In this document: in pieces, positions 19,777-51,645 of the stretch
Numbering within the stretch: the first letter of the stretch is position 1
How the letters are laid out: each line of letters opens with the position of its first letter
Assembly: GCA_009103225.1 (NCBI GenBank)
Contig: RHPI01003642.1
Location: 1,231,099-1,295,098, forward strand
DNA: 64,000 nucleotides
From: Chlorokybus atmophyticus
Lineage: Eukaryota; Plantae; Mesostigma and Chlorokybus algae
Direction: 5' to 3'
The notes under the pieces: generated by a model
Seen by the model: only the letters and a program-made list of their open reading frames with translations
The model's database searches: none
What the model was told of the DNA's origin: nothing
Made by a program: the position numbers and the translations under genes

Positions 19777-22700
19777 GCCGCCACCAATGCTGTCGACCGA
19801 CACTGGACGCCTGCCGATGCACAAGGAGTAGCTGTACACCCTCACCACAGACAAACCCACTCAGGCTGAAGAGTCCCACACCGATATTATACCTGCACTA
19901 CGTTCACAACCACAACTACCCCAGCAGCTTGCCAATGATGCCGACACAACAACAGCGACAACGTAGCCCGCGACCTTCGCCTCGGGATGTTACAAGGCAG
20001 AAACGACTAAAGCGGACAGACGAATGCTGTGTGTCTAGTACTAGTACTACAAGTACTACTAGTACCCCTCAACAACCACACCGACAACGCTCACAACGCC
20101 GGCGACGGCTCTCTCCGAACGAATGATTGTTCTGACTCCTTTGCCTCCCTGCCCTGGGGGTGATGTGTGTCATCAAGTATGGTAGGCTACCATTGGTAGC
20201 TAATGGCCCCATCACCGCTGTGCGCATGGAGAGCAGTACACGGTGTCAACACTCTCAGCATGCTACGGGACTGACTCACTCATTGATGGGTTGCTCGACC
20301 TGGTGGTGTCGTCATGTCCCGCGCAGGTCGAGTGTCGCTTCGGTGGCGAGTCACGTGGGGGAAGCCGCGGCTCGACAGCACAGTGTTGTCATGTGACAGT
20401 TCCAATGAACTTAGCCTGACATCATTGGACTACTAGAGGGAGTTACCGGGCCGCGGTGTGATGCTGGGCCATGATGCCAGGTTGGAGGGTTCAAGTGCAG
20501 GTTTAACCGTTGAACTTGGCCGCTTCCGATGCTATGACTGGCTATACATTATAGACAGCCATGGTTGAATGCTTGTAGCCCTTTAAGGGTAATACCTTTT
20601 AACCTGCAATTAGGGCTGGGGCCTAACATTTACGTTCGGAACAATGTTATAATAGAAGAACATTCTTTGTGAGTGAGGTCGAAAAATTGCTTTTTACAAA
20701 TGAAACCCCCTTTAATAACGTTATTTGTTAGTTAATGTCAAATTGTTGAGACGATAACAAAACGTAATAGGTAGGGGGCCGTGCGTTAATACGCATGTTG
20801 TGCGCGTTGTGTCGTTATTTCAAATTCAGTTCAAGCAATCTCCATTACATAAGGCAAAGAGCACAAATCCGCAATGTGTTTACAACCAATGATGGTGACC
20901 GTGATATTCAATTGAGGTTGGGGTTGAGGTTTTAATTGAGATTGCAGTATCGTCTATGGTTAAATGTTGTAACTTTAACCATAATCGTAGACTCATTATA
21001 CACACATTTTCCGTCAGTAACTTTGTTCAGTATCTGTTCGTTATTGCATATGTAATGAAAACATACACTCATTTGTGTATGGTTACGAAATAATAGTACG
21101 TTAACAAATAATTAACAAGCTTGTTCCATTATTGTTATTTGTTTGTGTGAAAGCGTCAAATGTTTAATGCGCCCCACACATACCTGCAATGTAACCTCTT
21201 TCCATTATAAACGCACCTTGTTTGTTTAAAGACAAGACGTAAAAACACAATTGGACCACTGTTTGTTTCTGAAGAGTCAAATTGTATGAACTTGATTGTC
21301 ATTGGGGGTGATAAAGTGATGGCATGCATGCTTTGCAATAATTGCTATAGCATGCAATATGCGGTGGTTCCACAGGTTGGTGGTTGGCCGTTGGTGGGTT
21401 GAGTGGGTTGTTGGCAAGCTCAGAGGTGTGTGACTAGCGAGAGGTTTCGGCCAGCCCGTTGCAACCTTTTCTTGCTTATTTCTTCCTACGCGAGATCAGG
21501 CCTTGCCTGACAGACTTTGTGCATTCACAGCATGCTATGCACGTTGGTAAGAATGCATGCATACGCACGGCATGTTGTCAATGTGACATAGATAGACAAA
21601 CAGCGTTAACTACATGTAATAACACGGCTTATTTCATTTTAGCATCATACTGCATCCAATTGTACAATAAATGCATTATATCACATAACGCAATCGACTC
21701 AGAGAGTTAAGGCTTGTAGAATCAAATCGGCGAATATGTGATTGTATACATGGGCTTCATAAATATAAGACAACGCTGATGTTCGGCATGATTGTTATAA
21801 TAAGGTTATATGTCACATTTTATCGTAGTCCATACATGTGGGTCTTTGTTATCATGCTTGGTAGCCCCACTCAACAACGACACATCAGCATGATAACGTT
21901 ACTACATATGTGGTTATGTATACAACTGTCATCATATCAAGTCTGTATGTTTAAACATGTAATCGCTTACTATTAAGTTAATGGATTATGTTACAATTAT
22001 AAATCAGAAAATGGCCGACCTTTTATTTGATGGACACTATGTTAAATGTTTCGAGGATTTAACTCAGGAGTAGAGTGCCGTGTATCAGGCATGCAAAGCT
22101 TCACATATTTAAAAATTGCACGCTGCTTGCAGACTATTTAATCAACACATGAATAATAAGCAATGCATTATACGTATCCACGTGATATTTGTATAGCGAG
22201 TCATGAAACTTTTATTAAATTTTTACACTAACATATACTTATTAGTGTTAACACTCCAAATAACAGTTGTAATAACAATCATAAGACGCGGCTTACAAAA
22301 AAACAATTCTTTGCAATATTAATCAATGTTTATTATAAAACTTATTAATAATTGTAACATGCATATGCTGCACGTGTACAGTTGTTTAAACATGTCTATC
22401 ACAACATACACATTGAATGTGTAACATAGCGTATGTGGCATAGGTGGTGTCAATGCATAAGTTGTTTTACTATTTCTTATACTATTGTACATTCAATGTT
22501 TAATTCAAACATTGTATCGTGGTTAATCATACAACGTGGCCGCCAGGCTCACGAATTTATGAATTTTAAGCGAGTGTCACAGCCCACTCGACCACAAAAG
22601 AGTTGGTGCTTTTATGGTCGATTTGTGGTAACTTTAATGTACCTTCCCGTTACATCCCCCCCACGTAAGAACGCTGACGTCCACGGCAGCTGGCGCCCAT

Positions 22701-22840
22701 CAGCTGGGGAATCATCCCAGGGGTCTGATTTAGGGTCGGTCACCGGCCCCACCACCCAAGGACCGGCCAATCTAGGCCCATACCGGTCAACGCGCACATA
22801 GCGCACCGCTGCCGGCCCCACAGGTCGCATCGCCGCGATA

Positions 22841-25800
22841 GGGTAAAGTCGCCCTATTTCGTAATGTTTTGAGGTTATTTGGTAATAACTTCCGTTGTGC
22901 TGCTTTCGGGGCGGCAAACCTTTTATTAAACTGATAGAAGAGATTATTAGCTACGCAACGCATATCATTTTGGATTTTTGGGTGTTCCATAGCGCCCGTC
23001 CCACCCTCTCAAAGATTGGGGTGTAAGGGGTGATGCCTGTTTTGCGAAATTGCCTAATTTTATTAGTTGCTTTCGCAGGCAAAATGGTTGCATACAGCCC
23101 AACTGTGCCGTCAGCCACCTGCCTCATGCCGGGGCGGTTTGGCTGCATGCTTGCTGTGTTCTGCAGCACTTGACAATGGCTGCAGCCAAGTTGTGGCATG
23201 GCGCCGCCGCCCACTTTGGCGCCAAGTGTCATGCCTTGTGACGCCATAGCCAACACAGTGGTTGGGGGAGGTTGGCGATGTAATTGGCCGCAAGCAAGTA
23301 AAGGTGAGCAGTAGGTTGTGCGCGCCTTGCATGCATGCATCACTCATACACTCCCTTATACAAAGTAAAAAGTGTTATGTATGTACGGCATGGTGTCCTC
23401 ATGGTGTCCTATGTACAAAGTCTAGTTAGTCCTAAGGGTTGTTGCCTGGCACAGCTCTCCGCCTTGCCTTCTTCTCACGCCAGCGTTGTGCACCTTGTCT
23501 TGCTTCATGGCAGGGACGAAGGTTAAGTCCAAAGCGTGTGGCGAACAACATCTCCGCGCAGTCATGGAAGGGTTTGCCCAGTTGGTTCATGCACTCGACA
23601 GAGTCCCAGCAGTAGCGTAGCCAGATAGTATCCGCCTCTCTAGCAGTGCGCTCCCGTTGCTCTTTCTCTAGCCGCTTCCCCTCTTGAACAGCTTGTTTAG
23701 CCAGGTCCTTCTCTCTTTGTTTGCGCTCTCTTTCTTCTCTGGCTTGCTGTTGCTTGGCTGCTGCTTTTGCCTTCATTGCTGCTGTCCTCTGCGTTGCAAG
23801 TACGCTCAGCCGCCTTAGATGCTGCAATAGATGCTGCTTCTTCTGCCTTACGCTTGCGTGCCTCCTTCCTTGTCTGCACTGCTTCCTTGTCCACTGCTGC
23901 CCTTGCTTCCAACTCCTGCTCTCTCTCAAACGCCTGGTCGGCTGTCAACAGCTCAGCAGCCTTGATCAGACGTTTGCGAGGGGGTGGTGCAGCAGTGTGT
24001 GTTTCAACAGAAGCGGGAGCTCCTTCGGCTTGTTGAGGGTCAGCGGGGCTATCTCTTTCTCTGTTGATAGCGTGCAGCAAAGCTGACAGGCCAGGGGTCT
24101 CCTGACGCAAAGGGAAGTACTTGTCACATGCATGCTTGTTGGGTGGGATGATGCCGCATGCTCGAAACCCAGAGATGATGTTTGTAGCAGAGAGGCCCTG
24201 CAGGTATGGATGAGAAAGCAGGCTGAGGAACTCCCCCTCGCTGAGGTCTTTGTTGCTGTGTGTGTTCTGCCTCTCCCGGTAGACTTTCTTGTAGCATTCC
24301 TTGAATGTGTGAAAACACGACACATTGAGCACCTGGAGCATGTGCGTGGTATAAGGGGGTAGTACAAGGATGTGCAGTCCTGAATTGCGTGCGAACTCCA
24401 ACATGCTTGCATTGTACCTGCTGATGTGGCCGTCCACAATCAGCAGTGCAGGGTTCTCTGGGTTAACCCCACCAGGGCTGTGCATGCACAGGTGTCTGAT
24501 CCACTTCTTGAAGATGAGCGTGGTCATCCATGCGTTCTCTTAGGGATAGATTACTGCTCCGGGCACTTTAAACTTTTTGGTCTCGGCCGAAGCAGGTTGA
24601 TACACACCTTTGATAGTGCACAGTGGCGGTACGTTGAAGCCAGAACCAGTAACAGCTGCCACGATGGTCACGTGTTGTCTGCTGCTTGTTATCGCGCACT
24701 GAGCCCACTTGGCACCACTGCACATGCACACAAACATTGTTGAGTGATCCCCACCGTGTGCATGCAACAGTGCTCTCAATGTAGTTGCAAGCTTACCTTT
24801 GGCAGATGATGTGTGTGTTCCTGGCAGCACTGTCTGGTTCCACTCCCACCTCGTCTGCACTAATGATCCTCTCAGGCTTGTTGGTGAGCTGCAGGTCCAG
24901 CAATGTTGCTTCCAGCAGATCGTGGAAGCTTTGCACAGCTTGAGGGTTCAAGCATACACGCCTGGACTTGTCCTGCCTTGCGGGACACAAGTTTCCACCG
25001 AGCACACAGCCCATCAAACCACTTTTTGCCTGGACATTGCTGCTTCAACCCTCGTAGCCTTGGGTCTCCAGCAAAGCGCTTGGATACCTCCACGCATATC
25101 TCCCCCCAGGTGACACCACGTCCACAGTCATTCATAATCTTAGCCCAATCGGCAATGTCCCTCTCCTCTTCCTAGGTGAGTAGCAAACCAGCTCCAGCTT
25201 TCCTACACGAACAGGCATATGCATATCAGAATGGCAATGCATGTCACCGCAACTCTGCATGCTATTCACACAGCATGGCTCTTACTTGTACCTTGCAGAG
25301 TTCGCACCCTCTTTCACGTAGTTGTGCATAGTGGAGGACGCCATGCCCAAGCTGCTGGCTGCCTCAGCAACAGACATACAACCTCGATGCACAGCCTCAA
25401 CTGCCCGTGCAATACCTTCCTTCCTGCTGGCATGATCCTCGTAGGCCCCTTTGGCTGATGGCCCACTGATTCTCGCTTTTGCTCTTCTTGCTGCTCCCCT
25501 CTTAGCTTGCACACGTTTTCTCTACGGGGTAACAAGGTGTCAGCCAGCAACATGGTGGTATGATGGCCTCCAAGGTCAAGGGATGACGAGTGTGCACAAC
25601 ATGCACATCACCACAAATACCACTTACCCGTGCAGGCTTGCGTGCCATAGTTTCTAAAAATAGCCTAGACTCATCCTGTGTACCCTCAACGTGCAATGCA
25701 AGCTTCTACACACCATAATACTGCCTCCCAAGCGTGCACTCTTGTTACAGCGTGGTATATTAAGTAGCCTCAAATTTGAGCTAACGCAACGCATTACCCC

Positions 25801-26173
25801 CTACAATTTGAATAAGTGCCCCTCGCCACCGCCAAGAGCAGAACTTTGTAAACATGTTTGTTATATTATAAGCTTCCATAAGCAACAAACCCCACTTAAT
25901 TTAGCCATCAGATGCAAAAGTAACGTGCAACCAAACGTTTATGTGCATCTGGTTCAAAAATGTGATACCAATCTGCTAGGTTGAAATTTCATATCTCCCG
26001 CCCCAGATGGCCGTTTCAAGAGATTCAGGTTGCATTGATTAGGCCAGAATGGCCTCTTGCGTGGTGCCAAATGGCAGCTTGAATGCCAAATGGCCGCCAC
26101 ACCGGCCCAAAAGTCCGTAAACACCATTGACTAACGAAATAAAGGCTGGTTCTGAAATTAGGCAACTTTACCC
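22841..26173 (-). mobile_element. pogo/Tigger-type (DDE_1) DNA transposon, copy A, degenerate
   Basis: Imperfect 20-bp TIRs GGGTAAAGTCGCCCTATTTC / GGGTAAAGTTGCCTAATTTC, with TA on both sides (22839-40, 26174-75). Contains a transposase remnant. Confidence 0.9.
23432..25648 (-). pseudogene. pogo transposase A (HTH_psq, CENP-B HTH, DDE_1), disabled
   Basis: SADEVG...ENAWMT...LLIVDGH...LPPYTTHMLQVLN. In-frame TAG stops near 25172 and 24540, a frameshift near 24970 (relative to copy B), a second frameshift near 23790, and the third catalytic Asp replaced by Asn. Confidence 0.88.
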
Positions 26174-26232
26174 TAGGCAGGTCGCGCCCTGCCGCGCCGA
26201 CTGAACTGGTCAGTTCGGCGCGACTGCCATTA

Positions 26233-29200
26233 GGGTCAAGTCCCCTAATTTGGGAACGGCCCCTTATTTGGGGATTAGCCGTTTTTAGCTGATAGCTACC
26301 GGCCTGTGGAGTATTTGCCGGCCATATTATAGGTTTGGGCAGGTATGATTGATACGCGTCTAACGAGCCTTTAACATTGGCAAACGGATCAGCGTGGCGG
26401 GGGATTGAATTTCCAAAGTTGGTAAATTTTGTGGTTCAAACGGTGTAGTAACACCATGAAGTTTTCAACTTAATAACTCTGGCATGTGATATGCAAATTG
26501 GATGATTGTTTTTTTGTTGGGTTTGTATAGGGTATAGGACCTTATTCATCAAGTTTCATGCTATTCCGCGCGGAAATGCACTAGTTACAAAGTTCACACT
26601 TTTGGGGTGTAACGCAACGACACAACCAAAAAGTGAAGTTGGTGATTGTTGCCTTGGTGAGTGTTAGAACTGGTTTGGGCTCCGTGTATGTGTATGTATT
26701 GCAGTTTGCAATGCCTCATGCACTCACTAGTTGAGTGTTGGTGGCATTTCAGTTGTTTGCTAGCTGTAGGCTAAGGTGTGAGGGGGTGAGATAGTTTGAG
26801 TGAGGTGTGCTGGTGCAGAGGAGACAAGAGCAGTCAGAGAGTTGTACGCATTAGCTGTGTTGCAAAGGAGTTGTATACACTGCTACAAGGTCAGCTAGCC
26901 AGCTCAAGTCCTACCCTATGGTACAAAGCAGCACGCAAAAGGTGGGTGTGTTGCATTTGTCAGCCACTTTGTCATCACTGTGGCACAAGGCCACTCAGAC
27001 CACCCTGTTGCATCATGCTGTTGATACTGCAACTCTCAGGGTAAACGTGTCAAGGCCAAGACACCTCTGGCCAAGAAGAGAAGGAGAAGCCACAACAGCT
27101 ACAGCGGCATGCTGGAGGACATCCAGCGTGCTGTAGCCTCCATCAACCAGGGCTGTATGCGTGTTGCTGATGCTGTCAAGGACCTTGGCATCCCGGACAC
27201 CACCATGCGTCACTTCGTTGCACAACCACACACCATCCCCGAGTACAAGTGAGTTGAGGCTGTAGGTGCTGCTGTGCTGGTTCAGCAAGTCAAGACAAGT
27301 TAGTTAGTGACATGTGTATACAGGTTTGCTGGCGCTCCCACCATCTTTAGTGATGTTGAGGAGACTGGCCTAGCAGAGTTTGTCAAGGGTCGTAATGGGT
27401 GGGGTCGTGGCATGACGTGGACAGAGATTGGTATGGAAGCAGGCAAGAGGCTAGTAGGAGATGACAGAGCCAAACTGCTAAAGGGAGGGGTACTTGGGAA
27501 GAGGTGGTTCGCTGGCTTCAAGCGGAGGAAGCGGTTGGTCACCAGGAAGGCAGAGCCCCTCGACAAGTCCAGAAGAGTCTCCCTCAACAAACATGTCGTG
27601 TACCACTACTTCCAGCTGCTGGCTGAGCCTGTGCAGCAGCTGGGGGTTGGTCCGGATAGGATCATCAGCGTTGATGAAGTTGGCATCGAACCAGATACGG
27701 CCATGCAGAACCAGCGCATCATCTGCGAAAGGTAAACAAGTTAGTCATGCATTGGTTACACGCATACGCGCACACACACATGCGTTCAAACACAACATTA
27801 CTAACTTACATGTTTTGCACAGCGGGGCAAAGTGGGCACAAGCTGCAACTACAGGCAGCAGGGAGCACATCACCCTTATGTGTGCAGTCACCGGAGCTGG
27901 TGTCGCTGCCCCTCCCCTTGTCATTGTCAAGGGCCAACGCCTCACAGTGGATGCCAAGGACTTTGATGTACCTGGAGCAAGATTTGCAGCACAGGAGAAC
28001 GCATGGATGACAACGGAGATCTTCGAGTTGTGGATCAGGGAGTTGGTGAAGTGGTATCCCGGAGGAGTTAGCCCTTCCAACCCTGCACTGTTAGTGGTGG
28101 ACGGACATGTGAGCAGATGCAACTGCAGCATGATCCGCTATGCACAAGATAAGGGCCTCCACATCCTCATGCTGCCACCCCACACAACACATCGTCTTCA
28201 AGTGCTTGATGTCAGCTGCTTCCACCCCTTCAAGGAAGCATATAGGAAGGAGTATCGCCTGCGCCAGGAGACAAGATACAACTTTGACCTCAGTAGGAAG
28301 GAGTTCCTGAAGCTGCTGGTGAAGCCTTACTACGCTGGGTTGTCCCCTGCAAACATTATCGCTGACTTCCGGGCATGTGGACTCTTGCCCCTCAACACAC
28401 ATGCACTGGACAAGTACTTCACAGACAAGCAGCTGGCACCACCACCTCCTGGTCTGTTTGCTCTATTGAAGGCGATCGACAATGGCGATAAGGAGGATGA
28501 CAACAACAACACAGAGGATTGCAGCCCCAACACTGAAGCGCCAGCTAAACGAAAGCGTGGCATCAAAACTGCACACCTGCTGACCAGCAACGAGATAGCA
28601 GCAGGGATTGAGAGACAGGACCAAGCCAAGGTTGACAAGGCAGCAGCAGTGCAAGCACGCAAGGAGGCTGCCAAGCAGAAAAAGGAAGAAGCTGTGCATG
28701 ATGCAGCAGCAAAGGCAGAGAGGGTGCAAACAAAGAAGAAACAGGCTGCCTGAAAGAAGATGCTGGCTGAGAGAGAGAAAGCTGCCAAGACTCAAGCCAA
28801 GCAGGACGCAGAGAAGGAGTGACAGCAGGAGCAAGCACAGCAAAGGCAACAAGCACAACAAGCAGAGCAAACAGAACAACAGCAGCAAGAGAGAACTGCA
28901 AAGGAGGCAACCGAGCTGTGGATGCGCTACGAGTGGGCTCCCATGCAATGCAACAACCAATTGGGAGACCCCCTGTGGGACTATGCTGAGGGCTTCGCCG
29001 AGCGCCATCTCCGCCCAGACCCTGCCCCCCATGCACAGGCCAAGGAGGCGGGCCTCCGCTGGAGACAGTGGCCAAGGGAGCGACACATACACAAGAGACC
29101 ACCCCGCTAGAGTCCTAGACTTAGACAACTTTGTAGACCTAGTTTGCCTTGACTCACACACCCTGTACATACACATGCATGCATGCAAGACCTTTGTGCT

Positions 29201-29688
29201 CTGCTGTGCGCCTGATGCCACCCATACCCACACCGATGACGCCGCCGCCCGCTTGCTTGCAACCTTGCAACTGACACAAGGTTTCCCGCCAAGGCGGCGC
29301 AGCTTGGCGGGAACAAACCGCCTGCAAGCAATAGCCTGCACATCACACCCATCACAGCCTGCCCCCCAGCCTACTAGCTGGCTGCCGCCACTTCACAATG
29401 GCTGCGGCCAGCAGGTTGATGGCACTCAGGAATGGCTGACAGCGCCCATCAGCCTTTCTCGAGTCACCAAATTAGGGCACGCGCACCCTTGGGGTCAGAC
29501 CCTCTGCACCCCCTACTTTTGCGCGGTGTATCTGACACGATACCGCGCGAAAAATGTGAAAAAAAATATCACTGTGTAGCCTATAATTTCAGCTATCAGC
29601 AACTATACACATTACCGCCATCAACCCTATCAGTCAAGCACAATTTACTTAAAACCTCAAATTATCCCCAAAATAGGGGACTTGACCC
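26233..29688 (+). mobile_element. pogo/Tigger-type (DDE_1) DNA transposon, copy B
   Basis: TIRs GGGTCAAGTCCCCTAATTTGGG / GGGTCAAGTCCCCTATTTTGGG, with TA at 26231-32 and 29689-90. Confidence 0.92.
26918..29110 (+). pseudogene. pogo transposase B; catalytic core intact, two TGA stops in the C-terminal tail
   Basis: MVQSSTQK|GKRVKAK...GIPDTTMRH...EYK|RFAGAP...SVDEVG...ICER|GAKWAQ...LLVVDGH...LPPHTTHRLQVLD. TGA at 28751-53 and near 28820; the frame then continues as ...LWMRYEW...RWRQW to 29110. Confidence 0.85.
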
Positions 29689-29690
29689 TA

Positions 29691-32600
29691 ACAGTCGGAG
29701 AGCCAACGCTTTCCTGGCAGCATGAAAATCGCGGTATGTCGCCCGCATCATCGCAAAGTCGACGCGTGCTGCTTGATTTTGGAGTATGGCAGTCGACGTT
29801 GATTGCAATTTTGTCGATGACAGTGCGTTTGTGTTGTCATCGCTCGTGATCGCTGACAAGCGTGACAAGTCAATGTAAGTGTGTCGCGCAATCGACGTTC
29901 AGTGACGGTAGTTTGCATTAGTTTTGGACAGTCGCTGCTGCCAGTTGCTTCGGCTATGTGTTTCAAACTTTGTTTCTGGAGGGCTGAGTTTGTATGTATG
30001 CTTAGCGGCGGTAGTGTTGTGGGTGTGAGTGTAGGCGACGGTGATGTCCACCGCGGAGGCCTCTGAGGATGTCGCAGCTGGTGTGTCTGATGGTGTAGAT
30101 GTATGTACGCCGTCAGTGGGTGTGGATGGTGCTGCTCCTAATGGAGGCGTTGTGGGCGGGTCTGGTGGCATGGAAGACCACTCCAAGAACAAGTGGAAGA
30201 TGGAGCAGCAGCAGAGCGCTAAGCATGGGCGAGACATGCAGAAGGGATTTGTGGAGCAGCTGCGGAAGGACTGCAAGATGCCAGAGCAGACACATGCCAA
30301 TGTTATTTACCTGCTAGCGCTGACATGTGGACGCACGTGGCATATGGCTGATGATCGCAGAGGGGCAGTGTTGCAACCCTTGTGTCCTCATCATATGCCT
30401 GTCGCTGTGGGATCAGAGCCACTCGCCTCTCCCCCCGTCAACTACAGCCACATAGGTAGCCAGCCGGTGACTGATGTTGTGTTTGTGTGGTACGTGGCAT
30501 TAGCTGCTGAAGGCAGGGTGTGTACACAGCATGTGTGATTAGCTGACACGTGTTGAACTTATAGTCAGCGGCGGACTGCTGCTAGCAACAGCAAGAGAAC
30601 GTGGACCCCAACCGCCATAGAAGGCATAGTAGGCAGTCCAGTTATGGGAGGGAGCGACGTGGGTCTGCTGAGCGGCGCAGGAATGCAGTGGCAAGGCGAG
30701 AGGCTTTGGAGGGTTTGGGACTCCATGTGGATGATTCTTGGTCTGATTCTGGAGGTGATTGTGGTCGCGCTTACCGGATTTCTTAGTCATGCTGGCTAGG
30801 CTGTTAGTGGCAGGGTGTACATTAACATTGTGATCTTGTATCATTAAGTTAATGACATGTGTAGCAGCTGTTGCTGAACATGATTCTGATGTGAAGCACA
30901 TCATGCTTGTGGTTTGATTTGCTGTGTACTGTTGCTGAATGAGGCTGTTGCTGGCTTGTAGATGGTGACGCGGAGATTGACATGCCTTGTAATTCTCATG
31001 CTAGTGCATTTACGCCAGATCAGGTGTGTCATGCGTGTATCAACTGGCAAGCAATGCTCAGTGCAGTAGCAAGCAATGCAAATGGTATGGTTTGCAAACG
31101 CATGTGCGTATGCAGCGGTGAAAATCAAGGCCTAGACGCACTAGTGGGGTATGTATGTCCCCGTCTCCAGAGATGTTGCGTATGAAAGAGAAGCTCGCGT
31201 CATTGTTAATGCAAGTGGAGGATGCTGATGCTGTCAACCAAGACATTTCTCAAGAGTCAAAGGAGTTGCGGAGAGAGCTGCGTGCTGCTGATGAATGCAA
31301 TGCTGAGCTGCAGTCGAGCATATTAGCTTTGCAGCAGCAGGTGGATGGCTTTGATGGTGAAACACACAATCTCAAGCAAACAGTGAACATACAGTGATTT
31401 TGGATGTTGGCTGCACATGTTGTGTTGTTGTCACAGTCATGCACTACAACGCAGGTTACGATGCCAATACTAAGCACAGAACAGCACTTGGAGTGCCTGC
31501 CAGTACAGGTGTGTATGTAGCTTTTCACACCATAACTCGAAATAGCTGAAGTGAAGCACTGTTGGTGGCACAAGCCACAATGGTCAGTTACGGGATGATG
31601 CATGCGTTGAACTCATGCAGGATGTGCAATGTGCAGGCACAGAGATTCAGGACCTACAAGGAGATGCAGCTAAGTGTGCCAAGCGTGGAGCCACCTCCAC
31701 AACTTCCACCTCTCCCTCGCATGCATAGACCCTTGCTGCTCAGCACGCGCATCACAACACTCACAGAAGCAGAGGACCAGGCAATGGGCGAGTTGTTGCG
31801 TACACTGCATACCACTATGCTGCGGCATATGTGCAACAAGGACTTGCTGAAGATGCCACTCAAAGAGTGCATGTACGGTGCTGAGCAAGACCACCCAGTG
31901 CCGAGCACAGTGCACTACCTCCCTCTGCTACCTTGTAGCCCGGACAAGCCTGACAACCTGAGGCAGGCGCTGCTTGAAATGGCAAGGCACTTAGGCATAG
32001 ACAAGAGTACTCAGCACGTCATTGTGACGGGAGATCAGAAACCAGTTTACCTGATGCACCAGTTTAAGCGCTCTGAGCCAGGGTATTGGGACTGGCTTCT
32101 CCCATATCCAGGAGACTGGCATTGCATGTACAACATGATTCCCACCATCCTCCAGACTCTGTGGGACGCTGATATGGAGGAATGAGCAGTGGCTTGTGGC
32201 TTCCCTGCTGGACCTGCGTGACACATATTAGTGGAGGGCAAGAACTGGAAAAAACTGAATCTGTTCCTCCCGGGCTTGGTTGAGGGCTTGTACATTCCAT
32301 TGATTACCATTTCCAAGCTGCAAGCCCGAGAGACGCTTTGCTGCTGGACTTTGATACGCCAGTTGACAACGAAACAAGTATGAAGCACTTGCAAAACTTT
32401 GTGGCATATGGCAATCTCAGAGCAGAGCGAGACCCCACTTGGAACCTGTGGTGGCAACTTACAACACGCGATGGGTTCGCTTACCTGGCATTGTATTAGG
32501 CCTTGAGGACAGCTAACTGGCACCTGCGCACTGCAGCTATCAAGGGTCTTGCACCATTAGCTTTCGCATGGGACAAACCACACTACCAGAAGCTCATTCT

Positions 32601-35600
32601 CAGCACCTATGGGACTTGCAACACATGCCAATAGAGCTTGTGCAGCATTTGCAAGCTGGTGCTTTGTGGTGTCTGTCACTGGAACAGCCACAACGAGCCT
32701 TGCGAGTGACGAGGCACACAAGTCATTAATCAACAAGGCCCTGAAACTTTGCTTGAGCAGGCCCACGGAGGACTTCATGCGATGCAAGACGTCACATCCA
32801 CCATATAGAGCTGGTGTGGTGAAGGAAGTGGTTCATGTGCTGGACCCACGAGATGCCGCGCATATGACTATGGCCCCTAGCACTGCCCGCCACCATGGAG
32901 GCGCTCGAAGGAACATGGAAAAAGCATGCTGTCACTGCTGCACAATGCCAATGCTTTGGAATAGGAAGACCAAGAGTTGCAACACTTGGTAACCCACATA
33001 CCTGCCAGCGCAGTGGCTGCGGCAGACCTCGCACGACATCACATGCTGGGCCAAGACCAGTTTGACACATATGTTATAGATGTTCACTCCAAAGAGGTGC
33101 ACGGACACAAGATTGGACGGCGATTTGCTCTGAAGATCATGAGCAAGAAACATCAATAGCCGAAAAAGAGCAACACATCAGCAAAGGACAGGCGAAGGCA
33201 AACACTGATCTTCAAGAAACTGGCTCAGAGTGGTGGCAACGTCAACACATGTATTGCCAACTACACCGAGAATTCACATGCCTTGTTTGGTGATGACGGC
33301 GGAATGCGAAAAGGTGACAAGGCCAAGTTCTTGGTGGACTTGTACGAAGGATGCCCTCAGTCTCAGCTATCACAGTTCCCAAGTGGGGTGGAGTGCGTGA
33401 TTCTCGAGGGAATGTTCATCATCAACCGGAACCCACTTCAATCAGCACGCACATTTGAAGACTACCTTCACCAGACACTCATTGCATGGGTGCTCCCCCG
33501 TCTCCACTCAACTGCACTGCGCAGCTTTCACATTGTCTTCGATGACCCTGCACACTCCACAGGGGTCAAGTTGTCAATTTAGCAGCGCAGAGATGGTGGC
33601 ACCCAGCGTAGCCAGTGCGCATTGTGCAAAATGGATGAAATCCGTAGAAGCTGGCGAGGCCTGCTGAAAGATCGCTTACTAAAACGAAGCCTCTGCAACC
33701 TCATCACTGAATGGCTACCAAGGATGGCAGCCCCATACCTACGCGAGGGTCAAGAGTTAGTGATAGCTGGAGGCAGCGACACTCCTCACCTGAAGCACAA
33801 AGCAGTGGTCGTTGGAAGAGAAGGGGATGTCGCCTTCAGTGTGGCGGACGAGTACACATGCAATCATGCAGAGGCAGACTCCAGAGTCTGGTTGCACGCC
33901 TTCACATGACAGCACCAGTCAGTGCTTGTTCTCTCCCGACACTGACACCAGCCTCATAGGGTTGGGTGCAATTGAGCAAAATGCAAATGCGATGCAAAAG
34001 ACAGTGTACATGCAGTTGACTTCAAGCGGCAGCAGCAGCAGCAGCAGCAGGACTCCGTACCCAGACCTCACTGAGGTCTACACCCACCTCAACCGAGTTC
34101 TTCAATTGAGACTGGTGCCAACAGACCAGTGTGCAAAGTTCTTGCTCAGCTTCTACGCTGTGACTGACAGCGACTACACATCATACTTTGCCGGTATTTT
34201 CAAGCATTACTTTTTAACAGAGGTCATGAGCAAGGAATCAGTCTTCATCATAGGGGGTCAGACATCATGCAATGGGGATCTCACTCCAACATACCTTAGA
34301 TTGGTGGGCTGCGCCTACATTACGAAGCATAAGAACTGTTTCCCTTCCACCAGTAACGCCACTGCCCTATTCATGACACATGCGGTGCAAACGCTGTGGC
34401 TGACTCCATCTGCAGCCTCACACCATGGCTGCAACGAATTGCACAACAGATTTGGGACAAGACAGCAGACAACAAGGATGACATGCCCTCTGTCACAGCG
34501 TTGCTTCAACATTGCAAACGCTCGTCCTGGGTGATCGGTATGTGGTGGCAAATGTGCCAGCACACAATCACAGTTCCACCCTTGGAAGAACATGAATACA
34601 CACAAGAGCAAGGAGTGTTCAAGGCTGTTATGGACACGCAAGATGCCATGGCTGCAGCAAGAGGAAGGGCATCTCTAATCCTGCATGGTTGTTCATGCAA
34701 GAAGGCACAGTGCTGAGGCAAGCAATGCAAGTGCAGAAAGAGTGGACAGACATGCACAGCAGCATGCTCATGCATATACTGCGAGAACACCTGCGAGTCA
34801 ACGAACACACAGCATGAAGTCAACCCAGCCACATTCACCAACACAAAAGCAACGAACACTGAGCTAGACAGCACGTGGTCAGGGCAGGAGACTGATCTGC
34901 CCTCAAGCGACTCAGAGCTCCATGTCACAGCTGAGGAAGACACAGAGTGGCTACACACAACCTGTTGGACGCAGACCCCGCCCTGTGATTTGTGCATAGG
35001 CATTCAGCACATAATGCCCCATACAATATGTCTATATGGATATATGCATTACACTGTGCCCCACTGAGTGTAACGCTCTTTTGCAGCTAGTCATGCTTGA
35101 ACACGGACATGCTGGCAGCACGGTGCGCGCTAATAATGCACTGCATGCATGCCAATCCCCATGACATCACAGAGCATACAACTTGCAAAATATCATTTCA
35201 GGCAAGCAAATTCAACAGCGTACGCATACACACAGCCAACCTTAGGCAAAATAAGCCAAGCCACTTAAGAGCACGACTATACCTTCTACTCTACACTTAC
35301 CAGGTCTCATGCTAACAGTAACCTCCACGCCTGGAGGGAGAAGGACAGCCAGAGCGCGGATCAAGTTCGGCTGCGTTCCACCGCTATGCACCTCCTAATC
35401 CTCCATCGTCACCTGCTCGTACCGATCATTGCCCAACGGGATGACACCCCTCCAGCGACCACGGGACTGCACAGCCGCATCCCACAACCCCTCCGCCACA
35501 TCGCCTTGCATGCTGGCAGCGAGCGTAGCAACAAAATCAACGCCGCCGTCAACGCCACCCTCCGGCTCCACACCCACAGCCTGCTGGTCTGGCGCAGTCA

Positions 35601-36004
35601 TCCTTAGCGTCGCACGGTGCCAACAACTACCCCACCACCAGCAACAACCTCACCGCCTCGGTCGCCGCTGAGCTCACACAAACTCGCCACAACCACCCCG
35701 CTAACAACTAGCCCTAACACAAGCCAACAGCGATTGCGGCAACACGTCGATTCACGTCAACACTCGTCACAATGCGTCATCAAACGCTGACACAAAACTT
35801 TTTAAAGCCGTAAACAACGTCACTGTTAACGTCACAGCCTGCCGACTGACGACGCTGACAGCGACCCCAAAAGGCCGACATGAAAACCGCCTCTCACGAC
35901 CATCGACGCCAACAGCCATCGAGTCACCGTCAGCTAACATCGATGTGGCGCTACTCCCAGGCTGCAAGGATCTCAGGGGCAAGTTGCGTTGGCTCTCCGA
36001 CTGT
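29691..36004 (+). mobile_element. Academ (AcademX)-like DNA transposon, degenerate
   Basis: Perfect 19-bp TIR ACAGTCGGAGAGCCAACGC (29691-29709; reverse copy 35986-36004), flanked by TA on both sides. Encodes transposase, XPG/PIN-like and Cys-rich remnants. Confidence 0.8.
31640..34800 (+). pseudogene. Academ-type transposase + XPG/FEN-like nuclease + Cys8 finger, with many stops and frameshifts
   Basis: VHYLPLLP...VIVTGDQKP...LPYPGDWHCMYN; ALRTANWHLR; SDEAHKSLINK; VILEGMFII...FHIVFDDP; HAEADSRVWLH; SPDTDT; DSDYTSYFAG; QHCKRSSWVIGMW; CSCKKAQC*GKQCKCRKSGQTCTAACSCIYCEN. This domain order matches the established AcademX architecture. Confidence 0.78.
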
Positions 36005-37057
36005 TAAGCAAGTCGCGACCCATCGATAATGGTACTTATAAAGTGACTATTTACGATGTTAATGGATCGAGAAACAACGACCACAGAATTCGTGTGCAAG
36101 GCAGGAATCGAACCTAGGTCTCAAGCTCCGGTGACCAATGTCACAACCCACTCAACCACAAAAGACTTAATGCTTTTATGGTCGATTTGTGGTAATACAA
36201 TGTACCTTCCCGTTACAGCGAGAGATTGAAGAGTCACACGCACACGCACACGCGCACGCACGCACGCACGCACGCACGCGCACACACACACATACACACA
36301 CTGCACGCACGCACGCTGACTCTTAACCTCTCCATTTCTCTTTATATTCATGCCTCTTTGAGCAGGTGTGTTATTATTGCTACCGTCTATGGTGCACTGT
36401 GTGTGGCATGGTAGGAGTTGGGGCTGGGTGGAAATAGGTATGTGTAACAGCATGGTATTTGTTAGTTGCGACATGTGCGTGTCAATGTTAATGATGCTAT
36501 GTTGCGTTGTGGGTTTCTTAACACCTGTGTTTGGTTGATTACACTTAGTGTTGTCGTATTTGGTTGTGTATGTACTCTTTGCAGGTTGTGTGTTGGGTTT
36601 GTTTATTGACACGCGACATGCGTGCGTGAGTGACACGCATGCTAGCATACGCATCGTCACGTTGCATACCAATGCAATCGCAACTACACATACATATTCA
36701 CACACATGTGTGTGAGTATATGTGTGTACATATATATGCTTATTATGTGTACAGGTGTACTTAATAATGAGCCGAAGCTTGTACCACACGGAATCGCAAC
36801 TTATGAGTGACCACTACAGGAATATGGCCCTCGCAGTTGCACAGCCGACGGCCTAGAACTCAACACGTGGGCAGTCTGAAGGGCTCACCCTCGATATACG
36901 CATAACCTCGGTTGATGTTGGCCGTGTCCATTATAGACCGCACTCGTGACAGGTCGATTGCGCAGGGTCGCTATCAAAATTGCGACGCTCAGACGCAGCA
37001 CAAGATATCGCCTCAATAGATTTGTGCTTCAAGCAAGTAGCAGCGGCCTGGGTGGCG

Positions 37058-39821: not shown

Positions 39822-41784
39822 TCATTCAATGCCGCAATCCCCTACAACGACATTTGTCTGCGGATGTCCATTGCTTGATGCGGCTTGTTCCTCTGTGGCC
39901 GCATGACACAACAGTAAGTTTTCTGGTAGCATAGATGAGACACATCGGGCTAATGCTGTCCCACGGCGGTGAGAGGCACTTCCAACAAGCAGGTCAGTGT
40001 ATGTGCTCACCTATCCTCGTTAACACTTCCAAGCCTTCTACTACACGCCCAATAACCACATGCTTTCCTGTACAGCGAAAGGCATTCAAGACATTTTTGC
40101 TGTGCTTCAGTAGTCAACCTCCCGAGTTGGGATGTCACACATGTTGGCTCACCATCAAGCTGTGGAGCGGGCGCGAATGTGACATAAAACTGGCTGGTGT
40201 TGCTATTTTTTCCAGAGTTGGCCATGCCCACCACACCGGCAGCGTCATGCTTGTGCTTGAGTCCGCTCTTCTCGTCGTTGAACTTGGCACCATATATGCT
40301 GTCACCACCGCTGCCATCACCTACACACGACGACTGTGAGGGCAGGCCAACACTAACAGCCTCAACAACCCAACAACACGAGCGTGATTATGGAGACCTG
40401 AAAAGCAAGTGACACAAGTAAATACCTCGCACGATGTCGCCGCCCTGACACATAAACCCTTTGACAATGCGGTGCATGTGACAACCCCTGCGGTAGGGAC
40501 GCATTACATCGCATGCGAGTACATGAACACAAGTGCAAGTGCAAGTGCACTGTCTTACTTGTAGTGCAAAGGCTTGCCACTTTGTTTCCCAACACCCCGC
40601 TCGCCCGTGATTAGGCAGCGGAAGTTCTCCACAGCCTTGGGCACCTGCGTGAAGTGCATGTGAGCACCTCTGCATTCTGCAATTGGCATGTGCATGGCTA
40701 TGGCTGTGGCAGCTGTTGCAACATACAAGCTCACATCATCGCGCAGCTCGATGACGAGACGGCCCGCGCGCAATGGTGTTGGTTGACGTAGTAGCAAGGG
40801 TCCCTACAGTGTAGGCAGCGGGTGTGCGCATCACCAACCAGAACATCAAGCCTTACACGTCACGTCATTCGCAGAATAACCGCCATTGTGTCATACACGT
40901 GCGCATCCCTGTCACGCACTGACCTGGGCGCTTCGTGTTGGGTCGCTGTTGTAGGCGTCAACCAACATCTGAGCATCTGCACGTGTAGATGTTAAGAAGC
41001 AGCGCGAATGCTTATCCCAATTTCGAACAAGCATTGCTGCTTCTGGTGTCGCCAGCTGCTGGGCTTCTACTACTACTTGCTGGTGAACAGTTGTTGCTTT
41101 TATCACAGTGACTGACTTGATAATGGTGTGTTGAACATGTACTAATACCTTGTGAGTGTAAGTTATACGTGGTCTTGGCGACAACTGACAAGTCAGCGAT
41201 TAGTTTGTTGTATGCGCACAAAAGGATCAAGGTGCATGCGCGCAGACATGTTTGCGCACGTGCGTATGCTTGCGCACCTGTCCCGTCCTTGTGCATGTGC
41301 ATGTGTGCACGCGTTGGTGTACGTGTATGCGCATGCTCGTGCTTGGGTGTGTCATACATTGAGCACGAGGGGCGCATGCTTGCATATTGTAAGCATGCGC
41401 GCCTATATTGTGCGCATGCGTGCATATTGTAAGCATGCGAATGCGCGCCCATATTGCAAGCATGCGCATGCTTGCAATATGCACGCATGCGCATGCGCGC
41501 ACGCCTCTGCTTGGGTGTATTCGTGCATTTGCGTAGGCACATGTAGTTTCGTGTCTGTGTGCGTGCCTACATGCCTGCGTGTGGTGGAAACAAAGACGAA
41601 CTGCATACTCACACAGCTTCTTACCGTCATCGCTGAGGTCGTCCGGAGCGCCAGCACCCTCGCCTATCCCATAACGAGCGCCGCACTCGGCTAGAAACCC
41701 TACCGCGCGGGCGTACGCCGACTCCGCCTCCGCCGCCTCCGCCGCTGACCCCACGTCCACGTCCAGCCACACCCTCACTGGCAT
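39822..41784 (-). CDS. Cyclophilin-type peptidyl-prolyl isomerase with N-terminal insertion
   Basis: [12 protein letters not shown]...|[13 protein letters not shown]...|[10 protein letters not shown]|[17 protein letters not shown]...LHYK|[17 protein letters not shown]...[13 protein letters not shown]...[17 protein letters not shown]...|[11 protein letters not shown]...|VVVGDCGIE*. Confidence 0.92.
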
Positions 41785-44484
41785 TTTGCCAAACAATCCG
41801 CCTCAGTTCCAACAGCCAGATCCTACATGTCCTCGTCCTTTCGCATGTCTTCCTTCGTGTCCATCGCTGTGGGCATGTATTGGGAAAGGCGACGCTGGCG
41901 GGGAATGGGCGGCGGCCGGGTCGCTGAGCATGTAGCTGTGCGTGAACGACCGCTGAATGCTGTGAGTTGATGACCAGGCCTTACAGAAACACTCGTTGTC
42001 AAGCCAGAAAATTGGGCATCGACACATGGGCAATGCAAGGGTGAGCACTCTGGCTGTTATGCACAACACAGTAACGCAGAGTACGATCCAACCACGCTTG
42101 TCCGCACAATACCGAACTGCAATAACGCCTCATGGAAGGCACACATTCGAAGCAGCATTGAACATGTGTGTTTATATTCTAATTCTTTAAGTATAAAGTA
42201 AATGTTATGTTATTGGAGACCAATACGCTGTAACCTTGATGAGGTTGTACTGTATATATTAACATATATCATGTAACAATTGATTGAGTTTCATTGCGTT
42301 CATCTCATCATTGTGACGATCACGCTGTTCATTTTTACATTCCACATGAAGTTTTTTAAATGCACTTGTGTATTGCATTACGCGAGCTACATTGTTATTA
42401 TGCTGTGTATTTGGCTTGGCAAAGTCTGGTACATCTTGTCACGATGCTCGATGCTGCAATGATGGATGCTTTAGTCACGTTCATATGCGTTTAGAAACCT
42501 GCCACGCCGCGTCATGTGGACGAAGTTATCATGGACATATGACTTTTTGTGAAGCATGCACTTCACGGTTGCTCACCATCGCAACACATCATCACACACA
42601 TGTGACGATGATAAACACAACCATAACGGCAAGGCTCCTTTACCAGCAAACTGGAGGTTGGGCAGCATAAACAATTCGCATTGTAGCATAATTGTGATTC
42701 AAATATTAATCAATGGGCGATCGTTGTGGTTTAGCTCTGCTGCCTGCCATGCAAAACAGTGATGCCAATAGAGGGCGAGACTCTTAAACTCCTCACATGT
42801 TGGATGACTTTGAGCCACACGGAATGATGACCTGCCTGGAATGCAAAGCTCAGCTGCAGCGCTAGTCATCTAGGCAACTCGTCTCCCGCATGCAAAGGAG
42901 TGCTTTGCGTTGTGGGGTTGCCGTTGTTAACAAGTTGTTTGGCAGCACACCGAGCAGCCGCCAGCAGCATGGCTCAGCGCAGAAGCCCTGGTGGAGGCAA
43001 GCATTGTTGTAGCAAATAGTTGTAGCACGATTCAGAGATTACTACTGAGCAAGCTGGAGCGTGCTAAGCGAATGCTTTGATATGAAGTGTCGAAAGCAAG
43101 AAGCAGCTCGCGATTAGCAGATGAAAATGCATCTGAAACAGAAGCAGTCTTACAGCTTTCAACACTCATGTGCGCTCAGCGAGGCGCCAGCGGCTGCTAG
43201 TGCAACAGCAATGCGCCAATTCGCATGCACATTAGCATGAGAGTAGCTCACCCAAAGATATTCTTGTTTAATTGCCGCTCAAATTGGTAATGACATAATC
43301 GTAATGGTAATTCATGCACTAATGTGCTAATTGCTTAACATTCATTGATGTTGCTCGGTACACGGAACACGCAAAGCAATCAATCCAATTTTAGAATAAG
43401 AAGGCAACCACTTGAAGCCAAATTGAATGGGTGTGCATGTCAGCTTTTCAGCTCTTGCTCAATTGTATTAAGCCAGATTTGAAGTTACCTACTGTTGCAG
43501 TAGCGGATAGTCATCTCAATTGCTGGCAACAAAACAAATTCACACATGGATTGCTATATGCTGAGAGCATGTGTACAAGGACACTATGAGGGTGAGTTGT
43601 GGTGATGTGAACATGCAGTACAACTATCAGATGCACTTACGTTTATCACCTCATTGCTTTCATGCAAGCTGCGTTCGGATTTCGAGCATTGCTATTCCTC
43701 GCATCCTATACTCGCTTGTCATAGCAGAGCTGCTCGAGTGCAGGCCTTGTGGCAATAATTGTTGGGTAAGGACCCCTTCACATGTCGAACATTTGCACAA
43801 TCGTAAGAGATGTAATGCTTCATCTAGCAATCCTTGCTGTAATTGTGAAGGGTCTTGGTTGCAAAATTGCCTGCGTTTAATTACAAGAACGTCAAGGACT
43901 AGTACCGTTTGTTTATGACATAAACCAATTATTAATGAAGGCGCAAGGTGAGACTTGCTTGGTGTATTTGTAATGATACCTTGAGCATGCACTACTTGTG
44001 CCATGAATCCAATCGCATGTAAGGTGGCGAGTAAGCGCAAGAAGAATCACACAATCCCAAGCACATCCACCATGACATCGATCGCAACACAAAGGAGCAT
44101 TACACTTAGCACTCACTCTTAGCTCAACCAATATAAGCAAAAGCATGCACACATTCAAACTCAAGTACGGCATCAATGACTCACTCGAACGCTTGTACTT
44201 GAGCTGCCACTCACTCGGGCAACAATGGTGAGTGTTTGCATAACAGTGACTCACACTCGGATTGTTTGTGCTTGCGTTTGTTGGCAACGGTGAATGTACG
44301 CGTCCGGCCCCACAGTCTGTTGACAAAGCCTCTTCACAAACTTTGTCACACATATGAAATCCATCTACAAATTTGCGCTGCATGCACTGTCTCATTGCCC
44401 ATCATAGCCGAGCTGTAGCTCAAGCTAAGGTCTGGTCGTGGTCATTCCTGTTGCTATGCATATCCTCCTATCAGCTTTCAAGCT

Positions 44485-44488
<4 letters not shown>

Positions 44489-44534
<46 letters not shown>
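44489..44534. repeat. (TA)n microsatellite
   Basis: Direct reading of the sequence. Confidence 0.95.
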
Positions 44535-44536
<2 letters not shown>

Positions 44537-44729
44537 CTGGTTGCAGCTTACACAGAGGTTGGTGTGGGGTTCTTGAGTTGTAGGGCTGCTACTTGCACAG
44601 CTTGCCAGCGACCCATGCGTCATCGCCGGTGTTAAGCTGCGCTGTGCCGTAACATGTGGTGACATTCTCCCCACAACCCAAGAGCTTGCACACCTGCAGT
44701 CAGCAGAAGATGTGACACATTCGTGCGTG

Positions 44730-48649: not shown

Positions 48650-49926
48650 TTCGTCGTTGAACTTGCTACCATATATATATGCTTTCACCACCACAGCTGC
48701 TGCCATCACCTACACATGATGACTGTGGTTGCAGAGCCAACACTAACAACAGGCTCAACAACCATTGACAAGAGTGTCACTTTCAAAACATGAAGTGCAA
48801 GTGCCACACACGTGGTCACCTTGCACGGTACGGTGCATGCGACAACCCCTGCGGTGAAAGGACATATACTGTGTAGTGTGAACGCGTGCATAGACAAGTG
48901 TCTTACTTGTACTGCAAAGGCTTGCCACATTTCCCACACTTCGGCACCTGCCAAGCACCATTGCTGCATTCTGCATGCAATGTTGGCGGTGATGGCTGCA
49001 ACTACTCACGTCATCACGCAGCTTGATGATGACACGGGCCGCGCGCAATGGCATTGGTTTGCAAAGTAGCAAGGGTCCCTACCGGCCTGCCAACCAGGAA
49101 TGGTGTGCTGTTTTTGTTTTTGGTTGACACGCACGCCTGCTGCATACACGTGATGAATAGCATGCCAACATTGAATCACAAGTGTGCGCATGTTCGTAGT
49201 CACACGCACTCACCTGAGCGCTTCGTGTTGGGTCGCTGTTGTAGGCGTCAATCAACATCTGTGCGGGCAAACACATAACACATCAAGCACAGCACGAATG
49301 CACACCCCAACTCGAGCATTACTGCTTTGGTGTTCAGCCCTTGAGCTTCTGCCTGCCAATCAGCATACGTTGCTGTTTCAAAGTGAGCGCATTGGTGATG
49401 GTATGTCGGGCATGCACCAATGCCTCGTGGGTGTAAAGTATATGCGTGGTCTCGGTGACCAGTGACAAGCCAGCGGCTGATTTGTTGTGTGCGCACAAGA
49501 CGTTGATAGAGGAGAGAGGTGCATGCTCGCAGACATGTGTACGCGCGCATGCATATGCGCACCTGTGCGTCCTGGTGCCTGTGCATGCTGGCTTACGTGG
49601 TTACGTGGGTGGGTGGGTGTCTGTATGCGCATGCGTGCAAGTCGCAAGCACGCAACCGCGCCCAGCTGGCTATGCGTGTGGTTAGCTGTGTCTGCGCATG
49701 GTGTTTGGCGTGTGCGTGCCTACGGGCCTGCGTACACATGTGTGGTGGGATTGCAAACGCAGCGCGTGAATGCACACAGCTTACCATCATCGCTCAGGTC
49801 GTCCGGAGCGCCAGCGCCCTCGCCTACCCCATAGCGAGCGCCGCACTCAGCCAGAACGCCTAGCGCGCGGGCATCCGCCTCGGCCGCTGACCCCACGTCC
49901 ACGTCCAGCCACACCCTCACTAACAT
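48650..49926 (-). pseudogene. Decayed duplicate of the cyclophilin gene, 3'-truncated
   Basis: Colinear exons and introns with 40.25-41.9 kb ([12 protein letters not shown]..., AARVIIKLRDD). The exon-2 acceptor is shifted 8 nt (frameshift), [14 protein letters not shown] is deleted, and homology stops after AAGTTCAACGACGAA near 48650. Confidence 0.88.
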
Positions 49927-51139
49927 AATGCCAAACAAACAAGCCCCCAATCCTGGAATGCAATCCCCGCAGCCAACTGCTACATGTCCTTGTGCTTGTG
50001 CTTGTGCTTGTGCTTGTGCTTGTGCTTGTGCTTGTGCTTGTCTTCCTCGTTGTCCATGGCTGTGATCATGTCTCGGCAACGGCGGCGCTGGCGGGGAAGG
50101 GCGGCGACCGGGTCGCTGAGCATGCAGCTGTGTGCGTGCGTAGCGTTGACAACTGCTCATCAGCCTGCAGTGCCTGAGAGTTGATGATTGGGTAGGCCCT
50201 TGTAAAGCACTCGTTGTCGAGCTAGGAAACTGGGCATTCATGCAAGTTCATTCAAGGGTGAGCACTTCGGCTATTTACAATGCACAACGTGAAAGGGCAG
50301 ACGCAAAATATAAGCTAAACTCGTTGCATGGTACTTGTTGACAACAGAACCTTGGTTGAGGCACAACCGGTTGAAAAAGCAATCAATAGTTGGGTGCTTT
50401 CTAATGCTTCATTTTCATAAGCACTACAATTTCGCCCATAAAATAAATGCTTTATGGTTGCAACACATGTGTTGTATTCTTATGTCTTGCAGGTAAGCCT
50501 TGGCTGCGGGTTATGTCTTGCAGGGAGAACACATACAGTGTGGGGTGTAAGTGCGCAAAGTAAGTGGTGCTGCGGTGCAGCTTGCGGGGTGATAAGTGAA
50601 GGAGCCTGAGGGCTGCGGTACTTGTGGTGATGGAGTTATAGGTGCAGGGAGAGAGTGGTAAGGGAAAACAAATTGTGTAGTCCCCCCTAAGCTTGGTATG
50701 AGATCGTGGTTACTCAACAAGCTCTCTGTCCAAGGATGAATGTGGACAAGCACACAGCAGTCATGTAAGTGTGTTCGTTTGTTATTCAAGTTTGCTAAGT
50801 AAAGCGAGTTTACGTGCTACAAGCACTCACCTAACAGCGAGCTTGTGGATGCCTACTGTAAGGGGGGAGTGCCCCTCCTCCCTATAATCCCCTACCCCAA
50901 CACCACCTCCAGCCACGCCGACGTCACCGCCGCTGCCGCTGCCATGGCAGCTCATCGAGCAAAAGATGATCTGGCTATGGCGGTCTGCACTCTCATGCCG
51001 ATATCAATATTACTTATCGTAACACTACATCAGGGCACTAACATTAGGTTAATGGCCCTAATATGGCTTAAATGGCTGTATAATCCCGTTGGGACCTATT
51101 TAATCTCAAACAAGGGCGGGGAACCTCTATGGAGGTAGC

Positions 51140-51645
51140 TGTCACGGACGATTAAGTAATAACGCCATAATGACCGCAACACACTTCGTGCTTTTGTGGC
51201 CTAGTGGTTTGTTACATTGGTCATCGAAGCTTGAGATCGAAAAGGTCCTGAGGTTGAAACCGCCTGCCGGTTAATTAAGAAGGATTTTTAAGAGATTTCG
51301 TCGTTATCAATCCATGATAGGTCGCGCGTCAATGCGCGACTTGCCGGACGGCAGTCGGACATTCTGATGCGTCGCGCGTACCTGGAGCCGCCGCTGTGTA
51401 GTACCGCGCAACTAGCCTGACGACAACCGACAGTCGGTCACCCAGCGGCGCAATGCGCGCTGCGACTGCTCAGTGATAATTGCAAAAAACGCTTCTACTG
51501 CTTACTGACGAGAAGCCCTGTAAAAACTCGCATATAATGAGGACATTAAATGCCTAAATGGGGGGAATGTCACGGACGACAAGTTAAAACGCCACAATGG
51601 CTGCAAAACACACTTCGTGCTTTTGTGGCCTACTGGTTTGTTACA
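51140..51645 (+). mobile_element. TRIM family 2 (506 bp, 77-78-bp LTRs)
   Basis: LTRs TGTCACGG...GTTACA at 51140-51216 and 51568-51645. Perfect TSD GTAGC (51135-39, 51646-50). PBS TGGTCATCGAAGC; PPT GGGGGGAA before the 3' LTR. Confidence 0.92.

Follow-up and report, generated by a model that had tools for sequence, protein, structure and literature searches.

Several mobile elements are known for defined targets: Dada inserts in small RNA genes, Pokey in ribosomal DNA (rDNA), and Ty1/Ty3 and the Dictyostelium TRE elements are RNA polymerase III (Pol III)-directed. Terminal inverted repeat (TIR) elements, pogo included, have palindromic target motifs that reach past the target site duplication (TSD) (Linheiro & Bergman 2012, PMC3276498). 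AcademX elements are described in PMC10045372 (citing Kojima 2020) as joining a transposase and an XPG-type nuclease in one protein, with target duplications of 3 to 4 bp. Nested loci are familiar in repeat DNA (PMC12628747), and that paper, citing Witte et al. (2001), names terminal-repeat retrotransposons in miniature (TRIMs) as targets of further insertions. Here, we describe a TRIM of the alga Chlorokybus atmophyticus that carries three DNA transposons, two of pogo type (pogo A and pogo B) and one of AcademX type, at two neighboring insertion sites. The window, that is, the whole stretch of DNA analyzed, comprises 64,000 nucleotides (contig RHPI01003642.1, positions 1,231,099 to 1,295,098), and all coordinates below refer to it.

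The locus is a well-resolved nested insertion and adds a new, clean case in which, unusually, a single site was hit twice; nesting as such, and TRIMs as targets, were already known. The two sites in this TRIM copy probably form a local hot spot of insertion. With moderate confidence, we ascribe the clustering to the site itself and not to the TRIM family.

A TRIM with three inserts

The sense strand of the TRIM is the minus strand. The element is bounded by direct long terminal repeats (LTRs) of 80 bp with TG..CA ends, identical at 72 of 80 positions, and a 5-bp TSD, GCGAG, abuts both ends (Table 1). A primer binding site (PBS)-like sequence, TGGTCACCGGAGC, lies one base inside the 5′ LTR (36125 to 36137, minus strand), and a polypurine tract (PPT), GGGGGGGA, abuts the 3′ LTR (22655 to 22662, minus strand). 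With the three inserts taken out, exactly 534 bp remain, which are colinear with a second copy at 59052 to 59430, at 87% identity, as far as sense position 379; in the restored element the two insertion points, here sites 1 and 2, are separated by 57 bp. Short LTRs with a 5-bp TSD, a length below about 1 kb, noncoding content, and multiple copies place the element in the TRIM class. The original prediction for this DNA had proposed a TRIM with 80-bp LTRs and a perfect GCGAG TSD, a remainder of about 534 bp colinear with the copy at 59052, and three insertions within about 60 bp, all of which the sequence bears out.

The second copy has no 3′ LTR within the window. Its colinearity ends exactly after CCCTAA (59400 to 59430), whose TA, on the opposite strand, starts TAGGGTCGATCACC and is one of those in the window that most resemble a pogo TIR. 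No partner TIR for this break was found within the window, and the break could be another insertion of more than 4.6 kb or a deletion.

Both pogo elements have a DDE_1-type transposase (Pfam PF03184, E values of 1e-9 for pogo A and 1e-20 for pogo B), TIRs, and a TA duplication, as expected of pogo (Tc1/mariner) elements. With 55% protein identity and similar TIRs, they are two related families. An N-terminal CENP-B/Tc5-type helix-turn-helix gave no Pfam match in the upstream open reading frame (ORF) pieces of either element, a result of little weight in fragmented genes. All relatives returned by a protein search for further copies of pogo B were distant (at most 32% identity). We also considered a composite of pogo A, the 55-bp piece beside it, and pogo B moving as a unit; this was rejected, since the piece is colinear with the TRIM and has the order and orientation expected of it.

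The third element is 6.3 kb long, its TIRs (CAGTCGGAGAGCCAACGC) are perfect over 18 to 21 nt, and its sole Pfam match is DUF6589. A search of 1.84 billion proteins yielded 166 relatives, and tblastn aligned the region from 31643 to 34962 colinearly with long homologues of 1300 to 2200 amino acids. In the conserved C-terminal block of these homologues, no XPG domain was matched by Pfam, and EXO1 fell below threshold in a Protein Data Bank (PDB) sequence search. The predicted structure of the block (pLDDT averaging 72 overall and exceeding 90 in most of the core) retrieved XRN1/2 ahead of EXO1, FEN1, and Rad2 with Foldseek, at probability 1.0 and E values from 2e-7 to about 2e-3; the nuclease assignment for this family was settled only by fold search, not by sequence search. 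DUF6589 may be the Academ transposase, and its union with a FEN1/EXO1/XRN-fold nuclease in the modeled protein family supports an AcademX-type assignment, in keeping with the Academ-like label first proposed for the element. Among the homologues, several long DUF6589 proteins (P0055, P0065, and P0079) have an N-terminal OTU cysteine-protease domain, and most homologues have a C-terminal tesmin/LIN54-type CXC domain beyond the nuclease.

An assembly artefact, in which insertions from different TRIM copies were threaded together via short, high-copy TRIM pieces, is very unlikely. The window does contain N runs, as a scaffolded assembly would; high-depth contigs cover the TRIM pieces, and the linker between pogo A and pogo B is merely 55 bp. 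However, there is no N within 22575 to 36217, the 55-bp piece is below ordinary read length, and the matching 5-bp TSD ties both outer flanks together. The junction between pogo B and the third element, moreover, shares only TA-A, so spanning reads are needed to join them.

Table 1. Features of the nested TRIM, its three inserts, and the second TRIM copy (window coordinates)
Feature	Position	Strand	Remarks
TSD GCGAG, left copy	22570-22574		Pentamer repeated at 36218-36222
TRIM 3′ LTR	22575-22654	-	TG..CA, 80 bp, 90% identical to 36139-36217
TRIM internal, 3′ side	22655-22838	-	Starts with PPT GGGGGGGA; 22730-22833 is 88% identical to second copy; covered by contigs of other copies in a public DNA run (run X1)
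pogo A with both TA	22839-26175	-	Body 22841-26173; TIR TAGGGTAAAGTCGCC; DDE_1 ORF pieces 23700-24539
TRIM piece between sites, 55 bp	26176-26230	-	Hairpin with outer stem GGCAG..CTGCC; weak match to second copy
pogo B with both TA	26231-29690	+	Body 26233-29688; TIR TAGGGTCAAGTCCCC, 24/25; DDE_1 ORF 27482-28750
AcademX-type element	29692-36003	+	Perfect TIRs CAGTCGGAGAGCCAACGC; fragmented gene 31643-34962 (DUF6589 transposase-like and 5′-nuclease regions)
TTAA at right edge of third element	36004-36007		Candidate 4-bp duplication; left copy split by pogo B (T 26230 + TA ... TA + A 29691)
TRIM internal, 5′ side	36008-36138	-	PBS-like TGGTCACCGGAGC and B-box-like GGTTCGATTCC; 35998-36217 is 84% identical to second copy
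TRIM 5′ LTR	36139-36217	-	Direct-repeat partner of 22575-22654
TSD GCGAG, right copy	36218-36222		Read directly
Second TRIM copy	59052-59411	+	No insert at either site (site 1 reads CA, site 2 TTAG)

Junctions and geometry of the insertion sites

The junction at site 2 reads gccaT-TA-[pogo B]-TA-A-[CAGTCGG...CCGACTG]-TTAA-gcaag, which places the insertion points of pogo B and the AcademX-type element 0 to 1 bp apart. Three histories would fit this sequence equally well: three TA duplications at a single TA; insertion of the Academ element first, with a 4-bp TTAA duplication, and of pogo B later in the TA of the left TTAA; or insertion of pogo B first and of the Academ element later, with a 3-bp TAA duplication. 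The TTAA and TAA histories agree with the rule for the Academ superfamily and do away with the apparent anomaly of a TA duplication by an Academ element. The original prediction had assigned one TA to each insert; TA does flank pogo A and pogo B, but at site 2 this is only one of the three equally fitting readings.

The restored TRIM holds 26 TA dinucleotides, and the two that were used are the sole TAs between positions 225 and 344 (about 120 bp). Between them, the 55-bp piece forms a DNA hairpin (-19 kcal/mol, z of -3.9), the outer stem of which is preserved in the second TRIM copy. Site 2 is the TTAA spacer of a near-palindrome, CGCGACTGCCA-TTAA-GCAAGTCGCG, with a palindrome score of 8/10 that 42 of the 2244 TA sites in the window attain (top 2%). 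The motif RGCARGTCGCG follows both sites and occurs nowhere else in the window.

We suggest that an old, already mutated copy of the high-copy, 534-bp TRIM took three separate cut-and-paste insertions. The AcademX-type element and pogo B would have entered one TTAA/TA, the spacer of the near-palindrome, and pogo A the next TA, 57 bp off on the far side of the same internal hairpin. The scarcity of TA in the GC-rich core may channel insertions to the two used TAs, and palindromic or hairpin geometry, of the kind favored by DDE transposases, may draw them in. The first hit would have left a transposon end adjoining the TA and so aided later insertion, and selection would tolerate insertions in dead, decayed repeat DNA. 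The structure of the locus, the nature of its elements, the palindrome, the site changes unique to this copy, and the empty state of the contigs from other TRIM copies are shown here; the part played by geometry in the clustering and the order of events are inferred.

Several points weigh against this reading. There is one locus with three events, from which no preference is measurable, and the junction leaves the insertion order ambiguous. Site 1 has a palindrome score of only 4/10. About 2% of TA sites are palindromic, and palindromy alone cannot explain a double hit at one site. The RGCARGTCGCG motif was defined post hoc, after the sites were seen. The target sites resemble pogo TIRs only weakly, ranking 137 of 4487 in a noncircular test (top 3%), and mimicry of pogo TIRs by the target sites was dropped as an explanation on that rank. 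The targeting or strong local preference that the original prediction had put forward is plausible for the site itself, in view of two neighboring TAs of 2244, a double hit within 0 to 1 bp, and the palindrome; as a property of the whole family, it is unsupported.

Chance, other copies, and the TRIM family

Three pogo- or Academ-like elements were recognized in the window, all at two neighboring TA sites, and no other TIR elements with pogo- or Academ-like ends were found in its remaining ~50 kb. At 44481 to 44538, a perfect (TA)n tract offers many TA sites in its roughly 28 units but is free of transposon insertions. Given three hits on the 2244 TA sites of the window, the probability of such clustering is about 1e-6. 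The published Chlorokybus genome has 85 Mb with 31% repeats (PMC7027972), and by rough estimate the expected number of such triples genome-wide ranges from 2e-7, at 100 insertions, to about 0.3, at 5000 insertions with the target narrowed to the repeat fraction. Uniform chance is an unlikely cause of the triple; the case was selected after the fact.

That selection matters for an account in which insertions accumulate in harmless repeat DNA and a striking case is picked out afterwards, which we consider possible but rather unlikely. At least 5000 insertions confined to at most 25 Mb of repeats would lead to about 0.3 or more such triples genome-wide, and once three hits inside a 26-TA TRIM are given, the probability of the clustering rises to about 0.009. 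Repeat DNA commonly shows nested loci (PMC12628747), and the window holds another multilevel nest, in which a TRIM of a second family (TRIM2) sits in an LTR within a further LTR element. Against this stand the window-level probability of about 1e-6 and the entry of the pair at site 2 only 0 to 1 bp apart; if copy numbers are in the hundreds, moreover, fewer than 1e-4 triples are expected.

Other copies of the TRIM were sought in run X1, one public DNA run that is stored as contigs; the unique flank of the locus is not covered there. The k-mer depth in these contigs is about 100 to 900 for parts of the TRIM, about 5 for pogo B, and 0 to 6 for pogo A, and the TRIM contigs have several distinct flanks at the LTR edge. 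Depth is not copy number; together with the varied flanks, these depths are a sign of a high-copy TRIM family. The form lacking pogo A is represented by a high-depth contig in which 22838 is joined to 26174, and the form lacking both pogo B and the Academ element by three contigs in which CAAGTCGCGACCCATCGATGATGG directly follows 26234. All of the contigs of other TRIM copies shown here are empty at both sites.

At site 1, the contigs of other copies and the second TRIM copy have GACAGG, which lacks TA, where the nested copy has GATAGG; at site 2, they have TTAGG, which lacks TTAA, where the nested copy has TTAAG. Therefore, the TA of site 1 and the TTAA of site 2 are private to the nested copy. 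Both private changes are transitions, CA to TA at 22839 and TTAG to TTAA at 36006. Such changes would be expected from the deamination of methylated cytosine, and aging GC-rich repeats may gain TA targets in this way.

Beyond the TRIM contigs, a pogo B-like contig of 461 nt, 95.6% identical, continues for 35 nt past the pogo B end into sequence unlike the TRIM flank in the window. A metagenome scan with the TRIM sequence adjoining site 2 gave a single chance match, without similarity to the window, and no further copies. The original prediction held that empty TRIM copies, together with other pogo and Academ copies spread over random TAs, would speak for a chance stack. The contigs shown are empty, and the flank of one pogo B relative is not TRIM sequence; these data come from one run.

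These data also bear on the proposal that DNA transposons are drawn to the TRIM family itself, whether by hairpin recognition, open chromatin, or Pol III/TFIIIC occupancy, and that landing pads are thereby dispersed whenever the family amplifies. In favor of it, A/B-box-like sequence occurs close to the PBS in the family, the outer stem of the hairpin is conserved in the second copy, and that copy breaks its colinearity exactly at a TA; with pogo copy numbers as low as they look, most TRIMs would be empty even under strong targeting. On the other side, pogo cannot use the CA that contigs of other copies have at site 1, these contigs have TTAG at site 2, those shown are empty at both sites, the pogo B-like contig runs into sequence unlike the TRIM flank in the window, and TRIM2, at 51140 to 51645, is empty. 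Inside the TRIM, ARAGORN and Rfam called neither a full tRNA gene nor any Pol III element or RNA family, so TFIIIC occupancy is still conjecture. Because the used sites are private, the contigs of other copies are empty, the pogo B relative has another flank, and no Pol III gene is called, a family-wide landing pad is not supported, and we judge it improbable; the same holds for the mobile safe harbor for DNA transposons that the TRIM had been predicted to be.

A related proposal is that the internal inverted repeat of the TRIM, whose base carries TA or TTAA beside RGCARGTCGCG, could be a true hot spot for pogo and Academ transposases, through recognition or structure, such that aging copies of an abundant retrotransposon gain TA by C-to-T decay and then become preferred harbors. 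This extension, too, we hold to be improbable.

Surrounding repeats and comparison with known systems

Nesting as such is common in the region of the window. The second nest, at 50483 to 55486, has three levels. TRIM2 (TSD GTAGC) is separated by 11 bp from the end of an LTR of ~330 bp, "C," which has copies at 50857, 53636, and 54388, and the element with LTR "C" sits within an element bounded by 240-bp direct repeats (50483 to 50724 and 55247 to 55486). The internal part of the latter element has a further copy at 60802 to 61391. Elsewhere, 40272 to 42067 and 48651 to 50288 form a diverged direct repeat pair, 66 to 75% identical over about 1.7 kb.

The two TRIM families have in common a sequence that adjoins the LTR, TTGGTCA(C/T)CG(G/A)AGCTTGAGA (36100 to 36140 and 51216 to 51260). 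In the first family, the B-box-like GGTTCGATTCC comes after this LTR-adjacent TTGGTCA motif, and ARAGORN and Rfam call no tRNA there.

If the hot spot of the nested copy is real, it would offer a concrete sequence or structure for testing the target choice of pogo and Academ transposases in a streptophyte alga, and it would illustrate how mobile elements of one class can generate landing sites for those of a different class. To our knowledge, almost nothing is known about target choice in Academ elements.

The point of comparison with the Dada, Pokey, Ty1/Ty3, and TRE systems is that multicopy or Pol III-linked sequences can serve mobile elements as safe landing sites. The locus differs from them in that there many independent insertions occur at the same target position, whereas here a single copy is occupied and the contigs of other copies lack the used sites. 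Like AcademX, the third element has TIRs and one large protein with DUF6589 and an XPG/FEN-type nuclease, and a TTAA or TAA duplication fits the 3- to 4-bp rule; unlike AcademX as described, its gene is fragmented, and the duplication is masked by pogo B, so that a 2-bp TA also fits. The TA duplication of pogo and the TTAA of site 2, centered in an 8/10 palindrome, recall the palindromic motifs of TIR elements (PMC3276498); those motifs rest on hundreds of insertions and the present case on a single site, and site 1 is nonpalindromic. Finally, as in the nests of repeat "graveyards," a small noncoding LTR element bears later insertions, with a second nest in the same window, but here DNA transposons make up the later insertions; the three occupy two sites separated by 57 bp, and a pair of them entered 0 to 1 bp from each other.

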